A DNA stretch of 64,000 bases from contig JAANOX010000002.1 of assembly GCA_020184695.1 (NCBI GenBank), forward strand, positions 248,001 through 312,000. The letters run 5' to 3'. This DNA comes from Histomonas meleagridis 2922-C6/04-290x (Eukaryota > Protista > Parabasalia). The notes under the pieces were generated by a model. That model did not search any database, was not told the DNA's origin, and was given only the letters and a program-made list of their open reading frames with translations. Position 1 is the first letter of the stretch. Each line of letters opens with the position of its first letter. Both the position numbers and the translations under genes were made by a program. Below are positions 28,960 through 59,489 of the stretch, in pieces.

Positions 28960-31900
28960 TGAACAAATAACAAAATAAAAAATAACTAAAAGTCAAACAA
29001 AATAACAACTTAACAACACAAATAACAAAAAAATAACAGAATAATAATAACAATAACTGAATAATATGTAATATCTGAATAATAATAATATCTGAATAAT
29101 AATATCTGAATAACATTAATAATAACTGAATAATAATATGTAACAATTGAATAACATTAATATCTGAATAATATGTAATATCTGAATAATAATATCTGAA
29201 TAACATTAATATCTGAATAATATGTAATATCTGAATAATAATATCTGAATAATAATATCTGAATAATATATAATATCTGAATAATATATAATATCTGAAT
29301 AATATGTAATATCTGAATAATAATATCTGAATAATATGTAATATCTGAATAATATGTAATATCTGAATAATATATAATATCTGAATAATATATAATATCT
29401 GAATAATATATAATATCTGAATAATATATAATATCTGAATAATAATATCTGAATAATATGTAATATCTGAATAATATATAATATCTGAATAATAATATCT
29501 GAATAATATATAATATCTGAATAATAATATCTGAATAATATATAATATCTGAATAATATGTAATATCTGAATAATAATATCTGAATAACATTAATAATAA
29601 CTGAATAATAATATGTAACAACACAAATAACAAAAAAATAACAGAATAATAATAACAATAACTGAATAATATGTAATATCTGAATAATAATAATATCTGA
29701 ATAATAATATCTGAATAACATTAATAATAACTGAATAATAATATGTAACAATTGAATAACATTAATATCTGAATAATATGTAATATCTGAATAATAATAA
29801 TATCTGAATAATATGTAATATCTGAATAATATATAATATCTGAATAATATGTAATATCTGAATAATAATATCTGAATAATAATATCTGAATAACATTAAT
29901 ATCTGAATAATATGTAATATCTGAATAATATGTAATATCTGAATAATAATATCTGAATAATATATAATATCTGAATAATATATAATATCTGAATAATATG
30001 TAATATCTGAATAATATGTAATATCTGAATAATAATATCTGAATAATATATAATATCTGAATAATATATAATATCTGAATAATATATAATATCTGAATAA
30101 TATATAATATCTGAATAATAATATCTGAATAATATGTAATATCTGAATAATATATAATATCTGAATAATAATATCTGAATAATATATAATATCTGAATAA
30201 TAATATCTGAATAATATATAATATCTGAATAATATGTAATATCTGAATAATATATAATATCTGAATAATATGTAATATCTGAATAATAATATCTGAATAA
30301 TATATAATATCTGAATAATATGTAATATCTGAATAATATGTAATATCTGAATAATAATATCTGAATAATATATAATATCTGAATAATATATAATATCTGA
30401 ATAATATGTAATATCTGAATAATAATATCTGAATAATATATAATATCTGAATAATATATAATATCTGAATAATATATAATATCTGAATAATATATAATAT
30501 CTGAATAATATGTAATATCTGAATAATATGTAATATCTGAATAACATTAATATCTGAATAATAATATCTGAATAATATATAATATCTGAATAATATGTAA
30601 TATCTGAATAATATGTAATATCTGAATAATATGTAATATCTGAATAATAATATCTGAATAATATATAATATCCGAATAATATATAATATCTGAATAATAT
30701 ATAATATCTGAATAATATGTAATATCTGAATAATATGTAATATCTGAATAATATGTAATATCTGAATAATAATATCTGAATAACATTAATATCTGAATAA
30801 TAATATCTGAATAATATATAATATCTGAATAATATGTAATATCTGAATAATAATATCTGAATAATATGTAATATCTGAATAATAATATCTGAATAATATA
30901 TAATATCTGAATAATAATAATATCTGAATAATAATATCTGAATAATATATAATATCTGAATAATATATAATATCTGAATAATATGTAATATCTGAATAAT
31001 ATGTAATATCTGAATAATAATATCTGAATAACATTAATATCTGAATAATAATATCTGAATAATATATAATATCTGAATAATATATAATATCTGAATAATA
31101 ATATCTGAATAATATGTAATATCTGAATAATAATATCTGAATAATATGTAATATCTGAATAATATGTAATATCTGAATAATATGTAATATCTGAATAATA
31201 ATATCTGAATAATATATAATATCTGAATAATATGTAATATCTGAATAATATGTAATATCTGAATAATAATATCTGAATAATATATAATATCTGAATAATA
31301 ATATCTGAATAATATGTAATATCTGAATAATAATATCTGAATAATATATAATATCTGAATAATAATAATATCTGAATAATAATATCTGAATAATATATAA
31401 TATCTGAATAATATATAATATCTGAATAATATGTAATATCTGAATAATATGTAATATCTGAATAATAATATCTGAATAACATTAATATCTGAATAATAAT
31501 ATCTGAATAATATATAATATCTGAATAATAATAATATCTGAATAATAATATCTGAATAATATATAATATCCGAATAATATGTAATATCTGAATAATAATA
31601 TCTGAATAATATGTAATATCTGAATAATAATAATATCTGAATAATATGTAATATCTGAATAATATATAATATCTGAATAATATGTAATATCTGAATAATA
31701 ATATCTGAATAATAATATCTGAATAACATTAATATCTGAATAATATGTAATATCTGAATAATATGTAATATCTGAATAATATGTAATATCTGAATAATAA
31801 TATCTGAATAATATATAATATCTGAATAATATATAATATCTGAATAATATATAATATCTGAATAATATATAATATCTGAATAATAATATCTGAATAATAT

Positions 31901-34465
31901 GTAATATCTGAATAATATATAATATCTGAATAATAATATCTGAATAATATATAATATCTGAATAATAATATCTGAATAATATATAATATCTGAATAATAT
32001 GTAATATCTGAATAATATATAATATCTGAATAATATGTAATATCTGAATAATAATATCTGAATAATATATAATATCTGAATAATATGTAATATCTGAATA
32101 ATATGTAATATCTGAATAATAATATCTGAATAATATATAATATCTGAATAATATATAATATCTGAATAATATGTAATATCTGAATAATAATATCTGAATA
32201 ATATATAATATCTGAATAATATATAATATCTGAATAATATATAATATCTGAATAATATATAATATCTGAATAATATGTAATATCTGAATAATATGTAATA
32301 TCTGAATAACATTAATATCTGAATAATAATATCTGAATAATATATAATATCTGAATAATATGTAATATCTGAATAATATGTAATATCTGAATAATATGTA
32401 ATATCTGAATAATAATATCTGAATAATATATAATATCCGAATAATATATAATATCTGAATAATATATAATATCTGAATAATATGTAATATCTGAATAATA
32501 TGTAATATCTGAATAATATGTAATATCTGAATAATAATATCTGAATAACATTAATATCTGAATAATAATATCTGAATAATATATAATATCTGAATAATAT
32601 GTAATATCTGAATAATAATATCTGAATAATAATATCTGAATAACATTAATATCTGAATAATATGTAATATCTGAATAATATGTAATATCTGAATAATAAT
32701 ATCTGAATAATATATAATATCTGAATAATATATAATATCTGAATAATATATAATATCTGAATAATATGTAATATCTGAATAATATGTAATATCTGAATAA
32801 TAATATCTGAATAACATTAATATCTGAATAATAATATCTGAATAATATATAATATCTGAATAATATATAATATCTGAATAATAATATCTGAATAATATGT
32901 AATATCTGAATAATAATATCTGAATAATATATAATATCTGAATAATATGTAATATCTGAATAATATGTAATATCTGAATAATAATATCTGAATAATATAT
33001 AATATCTGAATAATATGTAATATCTGAATAATATGTAATATCTGAATAATAATATCTGAATAATATATAATATCTGAATAATAATATCTGAATAATATGT
33101 AATATCTGAATAATAATATCTGAATAATATATAATATCTGAATAATAATAATATCTGAATAATAATATCTGAATAATATATAATATCTGAATAATATATA
33201 ATATCTGAATAATATGTAATATCTGAATAATATGTAATATCTGAATAATAATATCTGAATAACATTAATATCTGAATAATAATATCTGAATAATATATAA
33301 TATCTGAATAATAATAATATCTGAATAATAATATCTGAATAATATATAATATCCGAATAATATGTAATATCTGAATAATAATATCTGAATAATATGTAAT
33401 ATCTGAATAATAATATCTGAATAATATATAATATCTGAATAATATATAATATCTGAATAATAATATCTGAATAATATATAATATCCGAATAATATGTAAT
33501 ATCTGAATAATAATATCTGAATAATATGTAATATCTGAATAATAATATCTGAATAATATATAATATCTGAATAATATATAATATCTGAATAATAATATCT
33601 GAATAATATATAATATCCGAATAATATGTAATATCTGAATAATAATATCTGAATAATATATAATATCTGAATAATATATAATATCTGAATAATATGTAAT
33701 ATCTGAATAATATGTAATATCTGAATAATAATATCTGAATAACATTAATATCTGAATAATAATATCTGAATAATATATAATATCTGAATAATATGTAATA
33801 TCTGAATAATAATATCTGAATAATATGTAATATCTGAATAATATGTAATATCTGAATAATATATAATATCTGAATAATAATAATATCTGAATAATAATAT
33901 CTGAATAATATATAATATCTGAATAATATATAATATCTGAATAATATGTAATATCTGAATAATATGTAATATCTGAATAATATGTAATATCTGAATAATA
34001 TGTAATATCTGAATAATATGTAATATCTGAATAATATGTAATATCTGAATAATAATAACTGAATAACATTAATAATATCTGAATAACATTAATATCTGAA
34101 TAACATTAATATCTGAATAATAATATCTGAATAATATGTAATATCTGAATAATATGTAATATCTGAATAATAATATCTGAATAACATTAATATCTGAATA
34201 ATAATATCTGAATAATATGTAATATCTGAATAATAATATCTGAATAACATTAATATCTGAATAATAATATCTGAATAATATGTAATATCTGAATAACATT
34301 AATAATATCTGAATAACATTAATAATAACTGAATAACATTAATAATATCTGAATAACATTAATAATAACTGAATAACATTAATAATAACTGAATAACATT
34401 AATAATAACTGAATAACATTAATAATAACTGAATAACATTAATAATAACTGAATAATAATATCTG
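28960..34465. repeat. AT-rich satellite array 1: core ATCTGAATAA in 14/17/18/20-bp variant units with higher-order repeats
   Basis: Roughly 300 units such as ATCTGAATAATAAT, ATCTGAATAATATATAAT, ATCTGAATAATATGTAAT and ATCTGAATAACATTAAT. Rare ATCCGAAT variants recur 1765 bp apart (30672/32437) and 1783 bp apart (31570/33353). Confidence 0.97.
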
Positions 34466-42814: not shown

Positions 42815-43852
42815 ATGTTTACTAAAACTTACCAGGGGAAAAATTTATTAAATAAAGATAGTAGAGAAATTATACATCAATCCATTGAAATTAAGCTACT
42901 TTTTATGCTCGGACAAATCATATTTAATTTAACTGAAGAAAATCTCGATATATCAACTAAAGAAACGCTAAAAATATTTGATGCTAACAACCCATATTCA
43001 TCTAATTTTGTTATATGTAATATGATTTACTTTTTTTCACGAAAAAATTTTGATGGTATTTGTATAAAATATTCAGAAACAATTCAAGCAAAGGAAGAAA
43101 CAAAAGAAAATACCTCGAAAATTATTACAATATTTTGTGATTATTTAGCAAAAATTGAATCGCAAGAAACATATTATTTAATTGAGAAAATGATTAAGCG
43201 AGATTTAATAAATTCAAATATTACTAAAAAAATTTATTCTGTATAAATGTTTTAAATATTTACTTATGAATGGAGCAAATATCGAAAACACAGGTAAATA
43301 TGCAATTGCAAGTAAAAGTGAAGAAATTATTCATTTATGTGAACAAAATCATTCATCATTTGATGGCGCATATGAAACAGCAATTAAATTCCATAAAAGG
43401 AAGAGGAATCTATATGTGTTATTTTGGTTTTATTTCAATGATTTAATACTTAAATATAATATTTGGGGAAAGTTTGATTTATTTTATACAGCACTTATGT
43501 TAGCATCAACACTTGGACATAAAGAGATCGTAAAATTACTTCTTGATGAAGAAGGAATTGATATTAATGTTAAAACTGATATTTGTTTGTTTTTCAATGA
43601 TTTAATTAAACAAATATGAAATATCAAAATAGCATGTGGAAATTATTTATATCATTTGAAACTGCACTTATTTTAGCAACTCAAATGGGTTACACAGAGA
43701 TAATAAAATTATTTCAAAAAATGATATCAAAAACCAATGACTTTTTTCAAAAAGTCCTTTTTCAAAGTCATAAAATCAAAACCATTTTCATAAAAAATTA
43801 TTTGAAATATAGTTTTATAGAAATATTGTTGTTTTTAAAGAAAGTTTTATAA
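42815..43852 (+). pseudogene. Ankyrin/DUF3447-type gene B, internally deleted and frameshifted, carrying two 80-nt 17+3 cassettes
   Basis: The N-terminus is homologous to 59088..59489 (QIIFNL.EEN...STKE). A SVKCFKYLLMNG-like segment is out of frame. Ankyrin halves TAL...DINVKTD are separated by cassettes at 43408-43487 and 43581-43660. Confidence 0.7.
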
Positions 43853-49539: not shown

Positions 49540-49962
49540 TTAGAAAACTGCTGGAGCAACAGAAGCAATCTTTGGCCAAAGTTCTGCGCATTCCTTAGCA
49601 ACTGGACCTGTGATTGCAGAACCTTTCATTTCACCTTTATCGTTGATAACAACACCTGCGTTATCTTCGAAGCCGATGACAACGCCATCCTTACGACGCC
49701 ATAATCTCTTTTGACGAACGATAACTGCGCACATAACCTTCTTACGAAGTGTTGGCTTACCCTTCTTGATGGTAACAACAATAAGGTCAGAAACTGTTGC
49801 AGCAGGGAGTCTGTTAAGCCTTCCTTTATGACCACGCTTTGAAATAACAAACATTGTTTTGGCACCCGAGTTATCAGCGCATTGCACGACTGCACCAACT
49901 GGAAGAGCAAGTGTCATTGCGAATTTGGTGCCTTGTTGACCTGTACGTCCTCTCTTGGACAT
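49540..49962 (-). CDS. RPL23: 60S ribosomal protein L23 (uL14)
   Basis: [30 protein letters not shown] and [30 protein letters not shown] motifs; true start at 49962. Confidence 0.97.
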
Positions 49963-50290: not shown

Positions 50291-51514
50291 CTATTTATTA
50301 TGTAATTTTTTAATTTCCTCTATAGCTTTTCCGACGGTCATTTCAGGAGGGAAATTCCTCATGAAGTATCCCACAGCTTTATTAATTTTATTTGCATCCT
50401 CATCCGATAGCGCAGTTGGCGAATACTGAAATCGATTTGTTATAATATTTTTCCCATTTCCTGTTTTGGAAAAGCTCGACAACGTCACAGTGTTCTCGCA
50501 CATTTTGCTGTGCATATTTTGCAGGAGGCAAATGTCTTCGATTGGCTTCCGAATGTTAAACTGTCCAATGTTCGAAACCCAAACAATTGCATTTTTATCA
50601 TCAACGCAACCATAACTTGTGCTTTGTTTTAATGCATTAAAAATTTCGCCATTAAATACTTTATTGTTGAATTTGTTTCGTAATTGTTTGCCAGCTTCAT
50701 ACAGTGTCATTTTATCATCGATCTTATCAAGAACAACACTAACTGATGCAAAGTTATTACCAACAAAATCAATTTTCGATTTTTGTTGTGGGGAAACAAA
50801 AGAACGCAAATCAACGCATGTTAAACACCCAATGTTCAGTGGGCGTTTGACTCGTTGCATTGTTTCGGTTGCAATTGCAATGGAGAGCCATAATGACTCG
50901 GTGAGGCCGTTAAGCTTATTGGTAGATTTGTTATACCACTTGTGATTTTCAATGGGAAAACTATCCATGATGTTGCGTCGGTGAAGTGTGGATGGCGTTT
51001 CTGGATGTGAATAAGTTATTGGCATTCGTGATACTTTTAATTCATCTTCTTCTAAATGTGGATAAGGCTTTGCCGTTTTGAGCTCATTTGAAAAGAGTTC
51101 ACCAACTGTTAGTGGAAGCCCATTAACTTCTTGAATATTGTCATCAAGAAGAACTGGCGTAAGTTTCCTGTAAAATCCGCCATCTGTAATGCCATGGCAT
51201 GAACAAACAGAAACAAAGGTATCATTTGCTGCTATAGTTGCTAGGACTTTGGAAAAATCTGGCCAATAATGTTCACTAACATATAATGCTGCTTCATATG
51301 CTGTTTTGATTGAATTTGGAAGTGAATGAACTGTTCTACTGGTTGGGCGCGTTATAAAATTTTCTCCATCTGTTTTGAGACGAAATCCAATTATTGATTT
51401 ACGAATATTATCGATAATTTTTGGTATCACGTTTGGGTTTCCCACCCCAACTGAATACATAAGTATTTCGTGTGCAGCTATGAATCTTTTTTCGAACTGA
51501 GAAAGTTTCCTCAT
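50291..51514 (-). CDS. CoA-dependent acyltransferase / condensation-fold protein (HxxxD)
   Basis: CSCHGITDGG matches the HxxxD(G) catalytic motif; VDLR and SNIGQF segments resemble this fold. Confidence 0.55.
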   Translation of the reverse strand: MRKLSQFEKRFIAAHEILMYSVGVGNPNVIPKIIDNIRKSIIGFRLKTDGENFITRPTSRTVHSLPNSIKTAYEAALYVSEHYWPDFSKVLATIAANDTFVSVCSCHGITDGGFYRKLTPVLLDDNIQEVNGLPLTVGELFSNELKTAKPYPHLEEDELKVSRMPITYSHPETPSTLHRRNIMDSFPIENHKWYNKSTNKLNGLTESLWLSIAIATETMQRVKRPLNIGCLTCVDLRSFVSPQQKSKIDFVGNNFASVSVVLDKIDDKMTLYEAGKQLRNKFNNKVFNGEIFNALKQSTSYGCVDDKNAIVWVSNIGQFNIRKPIEDICLLQNMHSKMCENTVTLSSFSKTGNGKNIITNRFQYSPTALSDEDANKINKAVGYFMRNFPPEMTVGKAIEEIKKLHNK

Positions 51515-51646: not shown

Positions 51647-53115
51647 TTACTCTTTTCCTTCACATTTTTGGATATCAGTACAAATTTCTTGATTTTTGCC
51701 TTCAAGTATTTGAATAATGTCTTCTCGTTTGTGTTCTTGTGCAATTTTAAGTGCTGTCTTATGTTATCATAATAATTTCCAAACATTATTTTGAAATACC
51801 AAATTATTATATTAAATTTTAAATGATATAATTTAATATCTTGAGCATTGATATCTATTCCTTTTTGTTCAACAAGTAATTTCACAATTTCTTTATGACC
51901 ATTTTTAGAAGCTACCATAAGAGCCGTATGAAATTATTTAAATAAAATCCAAATAATATATTGGAATTTCAATATATTAAAATAGATATTCAATAATATA
52001 TGCAAATATCTTTAACATTAATATCAATTTCTTTTTGGTCTAGAAGTAATTTAACTATATTTGTATAACCTTTTTCAGATGCATAAATTAATACCGTAAA
52101 AAATATTCTAAATTATCGCCGAATATTACTTTGAAATTTTAAATTATTGAAACATATTTTAAATAAAGCAAATTAATATCTTTAGCATTAATATCTATTC
52201 CTTCTTGTTTGAGAAGTAATCTAATCGTTTCTTCTTGTTTTCTAATAGATGCTTTCATTAGTGCCGTATTAAATAATTTATATAATTTTGAAGTAATATT
52301 ATGAAATGCAAAATCATTAGTTGAAATAACTAATAAAATGAATAAATATCCTTAGCATTAATATCAATTCCGTCATATTCTAAAAGTATTTTCGTTATTT
52401 CATTAAAGCACTGAAATGATGCCTTCATAAGTGCTGTTTCAAATAATTTATATCATTTTGAAGTAATGTTTCAAAATCCCAAATTAGGAAATTAAACACG
52501 TAATAAAACAAATAAATATTTTTAGCATTGATGTCGATTTCTTTTTGTTCAAGAAGTAGTTTAACTATTTCTGTATGACCACGTTGAGACGCCAATATAA
52601 GTGCTGTATTAAAAATCGAATATAATCTCCAAATATATTTATGAAATCATAAATTTTGTAAAGGAATATGATATAAAAGTAACAAAAATCTTTGGCATTA
52701 ATATCAGTTCCTTCTTGTTCAAGAAGTAATTTAACCATTTCAATATTACCACAAAAAGATGCAATAATAAGTGCTGTTCGGAATAATTTAAGTAATTTCC
52801 ATAATTTATTTTAGAATATCGAAAAATTAGAATAAATATAAAATATAGTAGATTAATATCTTTAGCATTAACATCAATTCCTTTCTGTTCAAGAAGAATC
52901 TTTACTAATTCAATATAGCAATGACGAGATGCCCAATGAAGAGCTGTTTCAATAAATTTTGATTAACACCAAATTCTTCTTTTTCCGTTTGAAATAATAA
53001 AATGAACTATCAAATATTACACAGGAACATATTTCTTATTGATATCTAAGATTTTGTTTTGGATTTCCCATTGAACAAATTCAGCCAATTCGTGGGTAGC
53101 CTGACTTTCGCACAT
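51647..53115 (-). CDS. Ankyrin-repeat gene A interrupted by 32 non-canonical ~17-nt elements (8 cassettes); decoded product 307 aa
   Basis: Seven full 30-codon TAL...KD blocks and a terminal partial repeat recur with an exact 170-bp period. Removing 31x17 + 1x18 nt gives a 924-nt ORF from ATG 53115 to TAA 51649-51647 with no internal stop. Confidence 0.8.
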
Positions 53116-53466: not shown

Positions 53467-55482
53467 TTACGCTAATTCTTTATATTCATTTCTGTCAGAT
53501 GAAATTACTATTAATTTCTTTTCAAGAACTATCTCTCGTGAAGATTTCCCAATTAACACTTTGTAATTTCCTGTTACTGACAAAAACTTTTTATATTTTG
53601 GATAATACAACGCGAATGACCTTTTATCCAATGACATTTCGACCATTTTCTTTTCGCCAGGTTCCAATGATATCTTTTTGAATCCCTTTAATTCCTTTAT
53701 TGGTCTGTTTAGACCTCTTCTTGGGCCTTCTATATACATTTGCGCGACTTCCTTTCCGAAACATTCGCCAACATTTTTTATTTCGAATTTCACAATTATT
53801 TTCTTATTATCAAAAGTCTTTTTCCCAACTGATAAATTTAAGTTTGAATATTCAAACGAAGTATAACTTAACCCAAAACCAAAAGGAAACAAAACGTTCA
53901 TTTTCTTCATGTCATAATATCGATAACCTATAAAAATACTTTCGTGATAAATCGTTTGATTTCGTTCACCAAAATCAAGAAATGATGGATTATCTTCCAT
54001 TCTTAATGGAAATGTTTCTGCAATTTTTCCCGATGGGTTAACTTCGCCAAATAATATCTTCGCTAATGCTTCAGAACCTGCTTGTCCACAATAATATGGA
54101 AACACAATCGATTTCGGCTTATTTACCCACGGCATTTCTACAGGAGAACCTGCATAAACAACAACTATAACATTTTCTTGATAATTACATATTGTGTTAA
54201 TAAGTTCATTTTGTTCATCACTTAATGACATTGTTTTCCGATCTTTTGATTCTCGTTCACTTTTATCTGGTACTCCAACAAATATAATTGTTACATCCGA
54301 ATTTTGAGCAGCTTCAATTGCTTCATCAAGATAATTTTCATCGTTTTCATCTCTTAATAATTTATATCCTTTAGAATATTGTATTTGTTCAATAAATTCT
54401 TCAATTGATTCATACGCAGTTTTTGGTGTAATCGAACACTTCACTCGTGAACTCCCCCATCCTTGTGCGCGAACATTTTTTGCTTCTTGTCCGATAATTG
54501 ATATTTTACTATTTCGTTTTAATGGTAATAAGTTTCCTTCGTTCTTGAGTAAGACAATACATTCTTCAGCGACTTCGCGTGAAAGTTGATGATGTGCATT
54601 TTGATCAAATGTAATATTTTTCTTTTGTGAATTCGCTTTAAGAACAAATTCTAAAACACGTTTTACACAGTTATCAACTGACTCAATTTGAAGTAAACCA
54701 TTTTTAACATCATCTATGACCATTTTAATCGAATCAATTTCGGGTTTGGGCATTTCAAGATCAAGGCCAGCGGCACAAGATTTGGATCTGTTATGAACTG
54801 CAGACCAATCAGAAACAATAAAGCCATCAAACCCAAATTCATTTTTTAAAATGTCTGTTAACATTCTTTTGTTTTCAGCAAGAAATTCCCCATTTAATGA
54901 GTTATATGAACACATTATACTCCATGGATGTGCATGTTTTACAATCATTTCAAACGCAGGTAAATAAATCTCATAAAGTGCCCTTTCATCAACAATCATA
55001 TCTCCATGCATTCGATTCCCTTCAGAATTATTACATGCATAATGTTTAACGCATGCGCCAACGCCTTGGCTTTGGAGGCCTTCAACATAAGAAATTCCGA
55101 GTTTTCCGCATAAATAAGGATCTTCAGTGAAATATTCAAATGAACGACCGCATAACGGTGATCGTTTCATGTTGATGGCTGGGCCAAGAAGTAAACTAAC
55201 ACCATAATGTTGACATTCTTCACCAAGTGCTTCACCCATTTTTCTTATTAAATCCTCATTAAAACATGCACCCAAAGCAGAAGAAGTTGGAAAACAAGTT
55301 GAAGGATATACAGTTCTGTCGTTTGCTTCACATCTGAGTCCATGAGGACCATCTGATATTTTAACAGAAGAAATTTCAAGTCTTGGAATTGGAGCTGTAT
55401 TCCAAAGATCTGAACCTACGATGAGTGTTGCTTTTTCTTCGAGTGTTAATTCTTGGAGAAGTTGTTCTATTTTGCTTTGCAT
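53467..55482 (-). CDS. Glycoside hydrolase family 3 beta-glucosidase (bacterial-type, no signal peptide)
   Basis: SDGPHGLR, GRSFEYFTEDP, KHYACN, the nucleophile motif FDGFIVSDW, GIFIGYRYY-like YHESIFIGYRYYD, FPFGFGLSYT and a C-terminal Fn3-like domain. Confidence 0.95.
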   Translation of the reverse strand: MQSKIEQLLQELTLEEKATLIVGSDLWNTAPIPRLEISSVKISDGPHGLRCEANDRTVYPSTCFPTSSALGACFNEDLIRKMGEALGEECQHYGVSLLLGPAINMKRSPLCGRSFEYFTEDPYLCGKLGISYVEGLQSQGVGACVKHYACNNSEGNRMHGDMIVDERALYEIYLPAFEMIVKHAHPWSIMCSYNSLNGEFLAENKRMLTDILKNEFGFDGFIVSDWSAVHNRSKSCAAGLDLEMPKPEIDSIKMVIDDVKNGLLQIESVDNCVKRVLEFVLKANSQKKNITFDQNAHHQLSREVAEECIVLLKNEGNLLPLKRNSKISIIGQEAKNVRAQGWGSSRVKCSITPKTAYESIEEFIEQIQYSKGYKLLRDENDENYLDEAIEAAQNSDVTIIFVGVPDKSERESKDRKTMSLSDEQNELINTICNYQENVIVVVYAGSPVEMPWVNKPKSIVFPYYCGQAGSEALAKILFGEVNPSGKIAETFPLRMEDNPSFLDFGERNQTIYHESIFIGYRYYDMKKMNVLFPFGFGLSYTSFEYSNLNLSVGKKTFDNKKIIVKFEIKNVGECFGKEVAQMYIEGPRRGLNRPIKELKGFKKISLEPGEKKMVEMSLDKRSFALYYPKYKKFLSVTGNYKVLIGKSSREIVLEKKLIVISSDRNEYKELA

Positions 55483-55909: not shown

Positions 55910-55982
55910 GCCTGCGTAGCATAGTGGTTATTGCGTTCGCCTTGTAAGCGAAAGGTCGGCGGTCCGACTCCGCTCGCAGGCA
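55910..55982 (+). tRNA. tRNA-Thr: tRNA-Thr(UGU)
   Basis: Acceptor stem GCCTGCG/CGCAGGC, anticodon arm TTCGC-CT-TGT-AA-GCGAA, T arm GCGG-TCCGACT-CCGC, and a downstream oligo-T terminator. Confidence 0.92.
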
Positions 55983-56247: not shown

Positions 56248-56320
56248 TGCCTGCGAGCGGAGTCGGACCGCCGACCTTTCGCTTACAAGGCGAACGCAAT
56301 AACCACTATGCTACGCAGGC
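56248..56320 (-). tRNA. tRNA-Thr: tRNA-Thr(UGU), identical inverted copy
   Basis: Exact reverse complement of 55910-55982. Confidence 0.9.
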
Positions 56321-57820: not shown

Positions 57821-59489
57821 TCATTCATTCAAGTTTGTATTAACTGTTGAAAATAATATAAATAATTACCAAATATTATTTATAAACATAAAATTATTGA
57901 ATTAAATTTTGGATAAAATAAAATAATATCTTTAACAGTTATATCAATGTTTTCTTGTTCAAGAAGTAATTTAACTATTTCTGTGTTTTCATTCATAGAT
58001 GCTATATAAATTGCTGACTGAATTTTTTTAATCAAATATAAGATGATATCAAATAATTAAAAATTATTCAAATGGATATTAAAAAAAATACAAAAAAACA
58101 TTTTTAGCATTAATATCAATTCCCTTTAGTTCAAGAAGTAATTTAACTATTTCTATATAACCATTTTCAGATGCAATCATAAGTGCTGTTCCATATAAAT
58201 CAAATAATTATTAAAAATTGTTTTGAAATCCAAAATTATTAAAATAAGTACCAAATAAAACAAATTAATATTTTGAGCATTAACATCAATTCCTTTTTGT
58301 TCAAGAAGTAATTTAACTATTTCTGTATTATTATTTCCAAGATGCTTTCATAGGTGCTGTTTCAAATAATTTGAATAATTTCCAAATATTATTTTAAAAT
58401 ATAAAATTACTAAAACATAATTTAAATAACATCTCTAGAATTAACATCAATACCTTTTTGATTTAATATATATCTAACGAGTTCAATATTCTCTGATTCC
58501 GCTGAAAAAACTAAAATACCATAAGGAAGATTACAAGAATAATCTTCTTCATTTTTAGAAAGTTCATAAAAATATTTTATGAGAAATATATTTCCTGTTA
58601 TTGCCATTTCATTTAAAATATCATCATTAATTATCATCTGTCTATCTTGTAAATACCCAAGAATTTCATAGTTATGAAATATAACACATTTCTTTCCTAA
58701 AATTTCCAATTTTTTGATTTCTTCTAATTTGTTTTCATAAATATATTTAAATATATCATTTTGATGAAATTCAATTGCTGCTTCATATGCACCTTCAAAC
58801 GATGAATGATTTTGTTCACATAAATGAATGATTTCTATATTTCCACCTGCAACTGCAAATTTACCTGTATTATCTATTTTCGAACCATTAATAAGTAAAT
58901 ATTTAAAACATTTAACAGAAGAAAAAAATGCTGCATAATCAATTAATGAAACAGTTAGTTTGTCAATAAATGAATATATTTTACAATCACGTTGTTCAAT
59001 TGTTTGATTAAAATTAAAATTTGTTTGTGATGATATTTCTTGAAGTTTTTCGATTTCATCATTTTGTATAATTTTTGCAATGTCATTTTAATTAACAACT
59101 TTATTAAGTTTCGTTGCTATATTTTCCCCATTTTCTGAGTTAATTGTGTTAATTTTATGCAGAAAATAATATGATTCTTGTGTATTTGTTTTTTTAGAAT
59201 ATTTTATGAATGTATTAAATAATTTAGAATTATAACCACTATTTTCTTCATATTTTTCTATTTCTTTAATAAAATTCATACATTTTTCAAAATCATTCGT
59301 TTTATTATTTGAAACAAGTCTTGTGTATATTATTTGGCTTATAATCATGTTAAAAGATATTTGGAGATTTTTATTAAATTTACTAATTACTTCTTTTGTT
59401 GATTGGATAATGTTTTCTTTGTTTAAATTAAAAATTATCTGCGTGATTGATTTAAGCATTTCGAGTTCATTCATGGGAGATGTTGACAA
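57821..59489 (-). pseudogene. Ankyrin/DUF3447-type gene C, decayed, with four 17+3 cassettes
   Basis: The reading continues in frame past TAA 59088-59090 into LIDYAAFFSSVKCFKYLLING..AVAGGNIEIIHLCEQ. Cassettes lie at 58361-58430 (70 nt), 58190-58269 (80), 58018-58099 (82) and 57848-57927 (80). There is a +1 indel near 58340. Confidence 0.75.

Follow-up and report, generated by a model that had tools for sequence, protein, structure and literature searches.

Serial 17-nucleotide elements in an ankyrin gene of Histomonas meleagridis: a candidate system that would leave single codons as exons

The DNA described here (the window) comprises 64,000 nucleotides (nt) of Histomonas meleagridis 2922-C6/04-290x, positions 248,001 to 312,000 of contig JAANOX010000002.1 (assembly GCA_020184695.1). 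It contains, on the minus strand at 53115-51647, an ankyrin locus whose repeats are interrupted at regular intervals by short A/T-rich sequences. The locus consists of nine exons of 87, seven times 90 and 111 nt, none with a stop in its own frame, separated by a first gap of 81 nt and by seven gaps of exactly 80 nt. Each 90-nt exon reads T[AV]L...NA[KQ][DN]. These borders had been described in an earlier note on the window and were reproduced to the nucleotide, as was its statement that straight translation of the unprocessed locus stops after 32 amino acids. The gaps are T-rich, with 84% A+T, and the seven 80-nt gaps are homologous in register, with 61% identity versus 33-41% when slid by 1-4 nt, and with zero indels. 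The locus is without a gene call in the gene table of GCA_020186115.1 (contig WSYJ01000030.1), the assembly of H. meleagridis 2922-C6/04-10x (PMC13735942). The H. meleagridis genome has 43 Mb and 28% G+C, and its introns are scarce, with at most one per gene (PMC8529796). The gene content of the window agrees with this description and comprises long unbroken open reading frames (ORFs), BspA-type leucine-rich repeats, GH3, Spt20, RRP12 and kinases.

Each 80-nt gap can be parsed as four modules, each formed by a 17-nt element and one following codon, hereafter a slot (Table 1). The eight linker peptides that the earlier note had read from the slots were obtained again, with Gly in slot 3 in six of the eight focal gaps. 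Gap 1 is the most divergent; one of its elements must be 18 nt long, and its third element begins with CGGA and not with R-T-T-T (R, A or G).

Table 1. Features of the focal ankyrin locus and of the two other family members in the window (slot codons are given in order, followed by the peptide that they would encode)
Feature	Window position	Strand	Description
Exon 1	53115-53029	minus	87 nt; ATG start; N-terminal capping half-repeat ending ...ILDINKKY
Gap 1	53028-52948	minus	81 nt; elements 53028-53012 (17), 53008-52991 (18), 52987-52971, 52967-52951
Gap 1 slots	53011-53009, 52990-52988, 52970-52968, 52950-52948	minus	GAT, AAA, GGT, GAA; DKGE
Exon 2	52947-52858	minus	90 nt; TALHWAS...VNAKD; stop-free
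Gap 2	52857-52778	minus	80 nt; 4 x [17-nt element + codon]
Gap 2 slots	52840-52838, 52820-52818, 52800-52798, 52780-52778	minus	TAT, GAT, GGA, CGA; YDGR
Exon 3	52777-52688	minus	90 nt; stop-free, profile match
Gap 3	52687-52608	minus	80 nt
Gap 3 slots	52670-52668, 52650-52648, 52630-52628, 52610-52608	minus	CAT, ATG, GGA, AAT; HMGN
Exon 4	52607-52518	minus	90 nt; stop-free, profile match
Gap 4	52517-52438	minus	80 nt
Gap 4 slots	52500-52498, 52480-52478, 52460-52458, 52440-52438	minus	CGT, GGG, CAA, GAA; RGQE
Exon 5	52437-52348	minus	90 nt; stop-free, profile match
Gap 5	52347-52268	minus	80 nt
Gap 5 slots	52330-52328, 52310-52308, 52290-52288, 52270-52268	minus	GTT, TGC, CAA, AAT; VCQN
Exon 6	52267-52178	minus	90 nt; stop-free, profile match
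Gap 6	52177-52098	minus	80 nt
Gap 6 slots	52160-52158, 52140-52138, 52120-52118, 52100-52098	minus	AAA, AAA, GGC, TTT; KKGF
Exon 7	52097-52008	minus	90 nt; stop-free, profile match
Gap 7	52007-51928	minus	80 nt
Gap 7 slots	51990-51988, 51970-51968, 51950-51948, 51930-51928	minus	AAT, GAA, GGA, CAT; NEGH
Exon 8	51927-51838	minus	90 nt; stop-free, profile match
Gap 8	51837-51758	minus	80 nt
Gap 8 slots	51820-51818, 51800-51798, 51780-51778, 51760-51758	minus	AAA, GGT, GGA, AAG; KGGK
Exon 9	51757-51647	minus	111 nt; C-terminal capping repeat, ends TAA
Locus B, second family member	57821-59489	minus	pseudogene; DUF3447-type N-terminal domain
Locus C, third family member	~43240-43760	plus	truncated/decayed; ankyrin exons 43488-43580, 43661-43750

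The exon alignment contains the ankyrin core motif T-[AP]-L...A-[AS]..G[HY]..[IV]V..LL. A profile built from the exons retrieved about 127,000 proteins at E <= 0.001, and the six top-scoring ones, which were inspected, are ankyrin proteins; exon 2 itself scores 59.7 bits in the window copy and 62.5 bits in the identical locus L002. The ordinary relatives have an identical 30-residue core followed by a hairpin of four or five residues, as in ...NAKN-PHGN-TAL and ...NQKD-KDGK-TAL, from which it follows that decoding of the four slots would restore a 34-residue repeat (30 + 4). Neither the genomic sequence nor removal of whole gaps gives a period of about 33 residues with a D-x-x-G-x hairpin, which is obtained only by decoding of the slots. 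The x-x-G-x residues of the hairpin belong to the variable binding surface of designed ankyrin repeat proteins, and the hypervariability of slots 1, 2 and 4 would fit such positions.

The ratio of nonsynonymous to synonymous differences per site (pN/pS) of the focal exons is 0.57 in frame versus 0.74 and 1.05 in the wrong frames, and no stop or indel occurs in any of the nine. Purifying selection on the exons is strongly supported by the sequence comparison. All focal repeats carry a gap, which makes the gap older than the divergence of the repeats. The comparison of slot and insert divergence suggested in the earlier note agreed with its parse: the pairwise distance within the focal gene is 0.355 for the elements, 0.453 for the synonymous sites of the exons (pS) and 0.607 for the slots. 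Synonymous sites therefore evolve faster than the elements, which are constrained at the level of nucleotide sequence. In the second species introduced below, the mean entropy is 0.47 bit for elements, 0.81 for exon third positions and 1.0 for slots. The slots are thus the fastest-evolving positions, and yet they retain 38% G+C, a Gly codon and an Asn/Asp codon.

A relative of the gene was first found by a search with the sole sizeable ORF at the locus, of 98 residues, which runs from exon 8 into gap 8. This search returned one relative, P0001, on a 710-nt ENA metagenome contig, with 90-nt exons and 63-nt gaps. In an alignment anchored at the 3' ends, its gaps correspond in register to the final 63 nt of those in Histomonas, and the 17 nt absent from P0001 are exactly the first element, directly after the exon. 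The four gaps of P0001 were parsed as codon-17-codon-17-codon-17-codon and give RDGE, KSGY, KDGE and NKGR. A search with P0001 returned about 60 more ORFs of the interrupted-ankyrin family, all from ENA metagenome assemblies, and the family contigs that were fetched come from seven independent ones. The read-through ORFs of the relatives match PF00023, PF12796 and PF13637. The exon at L001 257-346 has an in-frame TAG (TALI*ASENGH) for which the gene caller gave Q, and may reflect a pseudogene or a sequencing error; nothing besides this TAG hints at a variant genetic code. On contigs L005 (873-1751) and L006 (646-1524) of the relative, a BACON-domain protein, a PFK fragment and a metallo-beta-lactamase-fold protein lie beside family members.

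The uL14 protein of the metagenome organism is identical to that of Histomonas, and its gene shows about 12% nucleotide divergence, nearly all at third codon positions; a look-up of uL14 gave matches only in the two Histomonas genome assemblies and in one metagenome, with no Histomonas transcript contig among them. Judged by these sequences, the ENA organism is a close relative of Histomonas, an uncultured parabasalid, and not Histomonas itself. The uL14 gene adjoins the focal locus (window 49543-49962) and has at least five copies with identical protein (L026-L032). Copies lie on the Histomonas contigs WSYJ01000001, 09, 30 and 157, all five in different neighbourhoods. Among four copies that share the query nucleotide at a given site, the differences from the relative's gene fall on different third positions.

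The gaps of the family vary in steps that correspond to whole modules. Most loci of the relative have gaps of 63 nt (three elements and four codons), a type that is over-represented because the loci were found through read-through ORFs, and several have gaps of 66 nt (three elements and five codons). A 43-nt gap is present in L023 and reads 3+17+3+17+3, with two elements and three codons, whereas L003, L004 and L035 have 80-nt gaps with four elements and four codons. Hence 63 equals 80 minus 17 nt and 43 equals 63 minus 20 nt. Variation by 17- and 20-nt modules is predicted by a structure of elements plus codons and not by an ordinary intron or a translated insert.

Together, 39 gaps of both species were examined, and the fixed 17+3 parse fits 31 of them, a narrow distribution of tiny lengths. 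These well-formed gaps were parsed from their 3' ends and pooled; the eight irregular ones left out of the counts are mostly first gaps and gaps of pseudogenes. Among the 107 pooled elements, position 1 is A or G in 99, positions 2-4 are T in 90-102, position 14 is A in 93 and positions 15-17 are T in 93-98, which gives the consensus R-T-T-T at 1-4 and A-T-T-T at 14-17. The elements within a gap resemble one another, with 12 of 17 positions identical between types. The (A)TT(T) ending that the earlier note had given for the inserts holds well in the relative and only loosely in divergent genes. In the slots, a Gly codon occupies the third place in 24 of the 31 gaps (GGA 19, GGG 2, GGT 2, GGC 1), and Asn or Asp the second in 16; slot 1 is mostly K/N/E/D and slot 4 mostly E/R/W/N/K/Q, with one stop in 124 slots. 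The same pattern is found in 75 inserts inferred from read-through ORFs, and the tetrapeptides of the relative resemble canonical ankyrin hairpins (xNGW, KDGE, DNGR).

The register of the slots is also distinctive. Of the 20 registers that a 3-nt slot can take in a 20-nt period, the proposed one combines the highest divergence in the focal gene (0.607) with absence of stops; its G+C is 0.38 versus about 0.05-0.25 in the others, and the neighbouring register has eight stops. Against a matrix of hairpins from ordinary ankyrin proteins that the searches had retrieved, its tetrapeptides reach +6.2 bits per hairpin in the focal gene, where 18 of the 19 other registers are negative and one has +0.3; with both species pooled it is the sole register with a positive score (+6.4 bits per hairpin). 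Other parses were tried and rejected. AT-AC termini give the wrong frame. GT..AG with shifted borders leaves three gaps that end in ACGG, loops of the INFR type result if one 68-nt intron is removed and 6+6 nt are retained, and a 51+17 nt division gives KVGI in the relatives. All these parses are worse than 17+3. The parse proposed in the earlier note has thus gained support from the module differences of the relatives, from conserved 17-mers next to hypervariable codon-like triplets and from a unique register. On these sequence grounds the pattern is real and non-random, and an independent species supports the 17+3 division.

Complete members of the family add information on the coding sequence upstream of the gaps. 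Seven ENA paralogues have intact N-terminal ORFs of 262-385 residues with a start codon, all of which terminate close to the first gap; the stop lies one codon beyond the first ankyrin half-repeat in five, ahead of the gap in one and eleven codons further on in another. An eighth ORF, P0249, has 345 residues and forms the N-terminal part of L035, a complete gene that is rather divergent. Downstream of this ORF, L035 has five gaps (83 nt, then four of 80 nt) together with four exons of 90 nt and a final one of 111 nt, the length found in the focal gene. The slots of L035 read DLGN, SDGR, NDGC and NNGK, and its elements have drifted considerably in sequence with their length unchanged. The N-terminal domains of the paralogues are only about 50% identical, yet the interrupted architecture is kept. 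That these complete genes with long intact N-terminal ORFs would depend on the gaps being bypassed is strongly supported. Ordinary proteins of parabasalids with DUF3447 and ankyrin repeats (Tritrichomonas foetus TRFO_25020, P0255) have the N-terminal domain of locus B and of the ENA paralogues, and share the 30-residue repeat core with the interrupted family. In ordinary ankyrin proteins of other organisms, unlike in this family, the repeats are uninterrupted and the 4-5 hairpin codons contiguous.

The two other members in the window are decayed. In locus B a stop at 59088-59090 interrupts the frame of the N-terminal domain, and the exon at ~58360-58270 is frameshifted by 1 nt; the gaps of this locus measure 70, 80, 82 and 80 nt, and the last of them still reads KYGS. 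In locus C the exons are preceded by gaps of the 80-nt type, one slot is TGA and a frameshift breaks the N-terminal domain. The decayed copies lose exon integrity and gap regularity together, which suggests that selection keeps both in the focal gene. With three members in 64 kb, the family is probably large in the Histomonas genome.

It is proposed that the focal locus is a functional ankyrin gene in which each of the four hairpin-loop codons (x-x-G-x) is preceded by a 17-nt A/T-rich element. The 3-nt pieces between the elements would be real codons, and skipping of all 32 elements would produce the normal 34-residue period. The elements may be removed from the transcript by a machinery that recognises the 5' R-T-T-T and cuts, in the manner of a ruler, at a fixed distance from the 5' end of the element, and not via the GT/AG spliceosomal signals of trichomonads. 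The suggestion of a ruler comes from the 17-nt length, which is held more strictly than the 3' sequence (above all in L035), and from the 5' R-T-T-T, the best conserved part. That the focal gene is expressed and all 32 elements are skipped by one mechanism or another, with the slots decoded, appears rather probable. The full proposal, a functional gene with codon slots and fixed-length elements excised from RNA, has about an even chance of being right. Removal from RNA seems more likely than ribosomal hopping or DNA excision, and the earlier note's term "gene-expression system" keeps its conditional standing.

Known systems offer partial likenesses to the elements. The spliceosomal introns of trichomonads occur in the same phylum, are short and T-rich, lie in otherwise intron-poor genomes and are carried by a few ankyrin genes of Trichomonas vaginalis, but there are at most two per gene, whereas the Histomonas elements come four per repeat, one codon apart. 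Validated trichomonad introns are GT/AG, with a 7-nt 5' motif, a 12-nt 3' motif with an ACTAA branch site and a length of at least 23 nt, type A having 56-196 nt and type B 23-28 nt in T. vaginalis and T. stableri (PMC12316389). As the earlier note had noticed, the elements lack GT..AG and the trichomonad branch and 3' motif: position 1 is G in 26 of the 107 pooled elements, the last three positions are T in 93-98, and ACTAA is absent from the elements of the parsed gaps. Classical splicing has lost support through these absences and through a length of 17 nt, below the 19 nt of the obligatory trichomonad motifs.

Ultra-short introns are known from Stentor (15-16 nt), the Bigelowiella nucleomorph (18-21 nt) and Paramecium (20-30 nt). 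They are, like the elements, tiny and of nearly uniform length, which implies that length is constrained, and differ in being GT-AG spliceosomal introns between normal exons, whereas the elements have no GT-AG and the exons between them 3 nt. Euglenid nonconventional introns and bulge-helix-bulge (BHB) introns are likewise removed from RNA without GT-AG ends, and BHB introns cut by the tRNA endonuclease can be as short as about 11-20 nt. Both types rely on base-paired structures of intron ends or exons, and no conserved pairing is present in the Histomonas gaps. RNAalifold found no consensus pairs in 14 aligned gaps, and z-scores of single sequences lie between -2.6 and +2.1, with their centre at 0. 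This absence of structure argues against end pairing of the euglenid type, against BHB introns and against a bypass-stimulating hairpin; moreover, the 3-nt exons are variable and could not supply the helix for removal of the euglenid or BHB type. Internal eliminated sequences (IES) of ciliates resemble the elements as short, A/T-rich, precisely delimited interruptions of coding sequence with quantised length classes. IES have TA or pointer repeats at their boundaries and are lost from somatic-nucleus DNA, whereas no direct repeats between element flanks and element ends were found in the parsed gaps. Nuclear dimorphism or programmed elimination is not known in parabasalids.

Several points weigh against the proposed removal of the elements from RNA. 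No mature element-free family protein was found with the exon profile among 1.84 billion representatives or in word-based searches with the 98-residue ORF and P0001, which returned read-through ORFs and ordinary giant ankyrin proteins only. There is no known machinery that removes 17-nt elements with such ends, one-codon exons in series of four are without precedent, and the elements are shorter than the 7-nt and 12-nt trichomonad motifs together. The 63-nt gaps of the relative are in frame and open, compatible with straight translation there. The hairpin score of the proposed register is due mostly to one conserved triplet, that for Gly. The constant insert length claimed in the earlier note applies to most elements, at 17 nt, and breaks down in a few: 18 nt in gap 1 and in an 81-nt gap of L003/L004, 19 nt at an A9 run in a 65-nt gap of L021, and a 65-nt gap of L024/L025, 1 nt short of frame, whose deficit lies in the region of slot 1 and element 2 and can be read as a 16-nt element. 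Two further gaps (window 43578-43660; L003 25-104) need 15+19 or 16+18 to avoid a stop in slot 1. The 18- and 19-nt variants are rare and located at homopolymer runs, and irregular lengths also occur in the first gap of a gene (81 and 83 nt).

The chief rival, though an unlikely one, is that each whole gap (80 nt, or 63 nt in the relatives) is one unconventional intron and that the protein has 30-residue repeats without the hairpin. The periodic triplets would then be leftovers of a 20-nt tandem duplication or parts of an intron signal. The likeness of the four elements in each gap (12 of 17 positions) makes growth by duplication of a 20-nt unit possible, total gap length is better kept than element length in the 15+19 and 16+18 cases, and the purine richness of the slots yields by itself K, N, D, E, G and R. 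However, the ends of such an intron would be the hypervariable slots 1 and 4, with no conserved splice junction. Unconstrained spacers should drift towards A+T, whereas the slots keep their 38% G+C, Gly, Asn/Asp and few stops. Gaps of 80 nt have exactly one element more than those of 63 nt, located between the end of the exon and slot 1, and all ordinary relatives have 30 plus four or five residues.

Quite improbable, too, is that the elements stay in the mRNA and are skipped by the ribosome, which would decode one codon between successive hops. A fixed skip length could reflect ribosome geometry, removal from RNA is here deduced and not observed, and the elements interrupt coding sequence in the manner of the mitochondrial byps of Magnusiomyces capitatus and the gap of phage T4 gene 60. 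These bypassing systems also involve non-coding inserts that need skipping, in many copies and possibly spread by duplication. They have matching take-off and landing codons and gaps of 27-55 nt kept in the mRNA, unlike the 17-nt elements: the variable codon before an element matches neither the next slot nor the triplet with which the element ends, TTT in most cases and otherwise nearly always ATT. No conserved hairpin or other RNA structure is present, and 32 successive hops would be needed per protein, four of them one codon apart.

It is improbable as well that the locus and its family are non-functional relics, arrays of pseudogenes made by tandem duplication with codon-like triplets as fossils. 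Decay is evident in two of the three members that the window contains, in-frame TAG or frameshifts occur in some loci of the relative (L001, L005/L006, L024/L025), and the gene table of the assembly does not include the focal locus. Against this, the focal repeats, all of them gap-bearing, have diverged at pN/pS 0.57 with no stop or indel in nine exons, unlike the decayed copies, which show relaxed selection. L035 retains a 345-residue ORF and five exons of exact length, change is slower in the elements than at synonymous sites, and the architecture is kept in two species and in paralogues with N-terminal domains about 50% identical.

Translation of the inserts has very little probability. The 63-nt gaps of the relatives would encode a 21-residue loop (x-VYFNNL-x-FQNNIWNFFKLF-x) within a new 51-residue repeat, and the Histomonas gaps of 80 nt would have arisen from this type by a frameshift. 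In its favour, 63 nt are in frame, the consensus is without a stop in that frame, dozens of ORFs cross several gaps and a long hairpin is conceivable for the peptide. Such translation is impossible in the focal gene, in which 80 nt shift the frame and stops occur in the upstream frame in four of eight gaps and in the downstream frame in six of the seven 80-nt gaps; the frame-neutral gap 1 (81 nt) also has a stop in the exon frame. In the relative, the gap of 43 nt in L023 is not compatible with the frame. From the family alignment, AlphaFold2 gave a predicted local distance difference test (pLDDT) of 63.8 and a predicted template modelling score (pTM) of 0.33, with long helices and no ankyrin stack or hairpin. 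The variable nucleotides are contiguous triplets, and those of slots 2 and 3 do not coincide with codons of that frame. Routes by frameshifting through the focal gaps were also considered and rejected, as several gaps have stops in all three frames.

Excision of the elements from DNA in the nuclei, or at the locus, that express the gene recalls the short, A/T-rich, precisely bounded inserts of ciliate germline genomes and is scarcely credible here, given that the element boundaries have no TA or other direct repeats (pointers) and that the elements are present in seven independent metagenome assemblies and in long- and short-read assemblies from bulk cultures of two Histomonas strains (platforms in PMC8529796). 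As to the mechanisms listed in the earlier note (non-spliceosomal micro-introns with 3-nt exons, deletion RNA editing, serial bypassing and IES-like excision), the present data demonstrate none of the four, and bypassing and IES-like excision have lost support, the former by the lack of a codon match and the latter by the lack of direct repeats. The literature check that the note had called for returned no description of such an architecture in open-access papers and bioRxiv preprints. A scan of JGI metagenomes with the pattern element 3 - GGN - element 4 gave 14 matches, none of them adjoining ankyrin exons and all due to chance. A comparison of promoter motifs with neighbouring genes was uninformative.

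The focal gene is flanked by two bacterial-looking genes on the same strand, a PapA_C-like acyltransferase (window 50291-51514) and a GH3 beta-glucosidase with an Fn3-like domain (window 53467-55482), both of which may derive from lateral transfer. Lateral transfer of bacterial-type genes is common in parabasalids. An Rfam scan of the window found two tRNA genes and nothing else. These are identical tRNA-Thr(TGT) genes in inverted orientation, at 55910-55982 (plus) and 56248-56320 (minus), whose flanks are also inverted repeats and which are separated by an A/T-rich spacer of about 265 nt. At 29700-34100 the window contains a minisatellite of about 4.4 kb and 14% G+C, with units of about 18-21 nt (TAATATCTGAATAATAT-like); its long "ORFs" (YYSDIT... 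repeats) are repeat artefacts.

Histomonas and its close relatives may have a hitherto undescribed system that removes or skips fixed 17-nt A/U-rich elements, by means of a short 5' motif and a ruler, and leaves exons of a single codon; the arguments for and against its existence are evenly balanced. With equal probability, the family would use this system in such a way that exactly the hypervariable residues of the binding loop sit between the elements. If the slots are decoded, they would be the first serial one-codon exons, and the elements the first non-GT/AG intervening sequences below the size range of any described spliceosome. The proposal, if true, would mean either radically altered splicing in one parabasalid lineage or a new machinery of RNA excision or decoding. 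Current gene callers would miss an entire gene family in a poultry pathogen and in a common relative from the gut, and the placement of the elements around the target-binding residues suggests a link between processing and the diversification of the loop.

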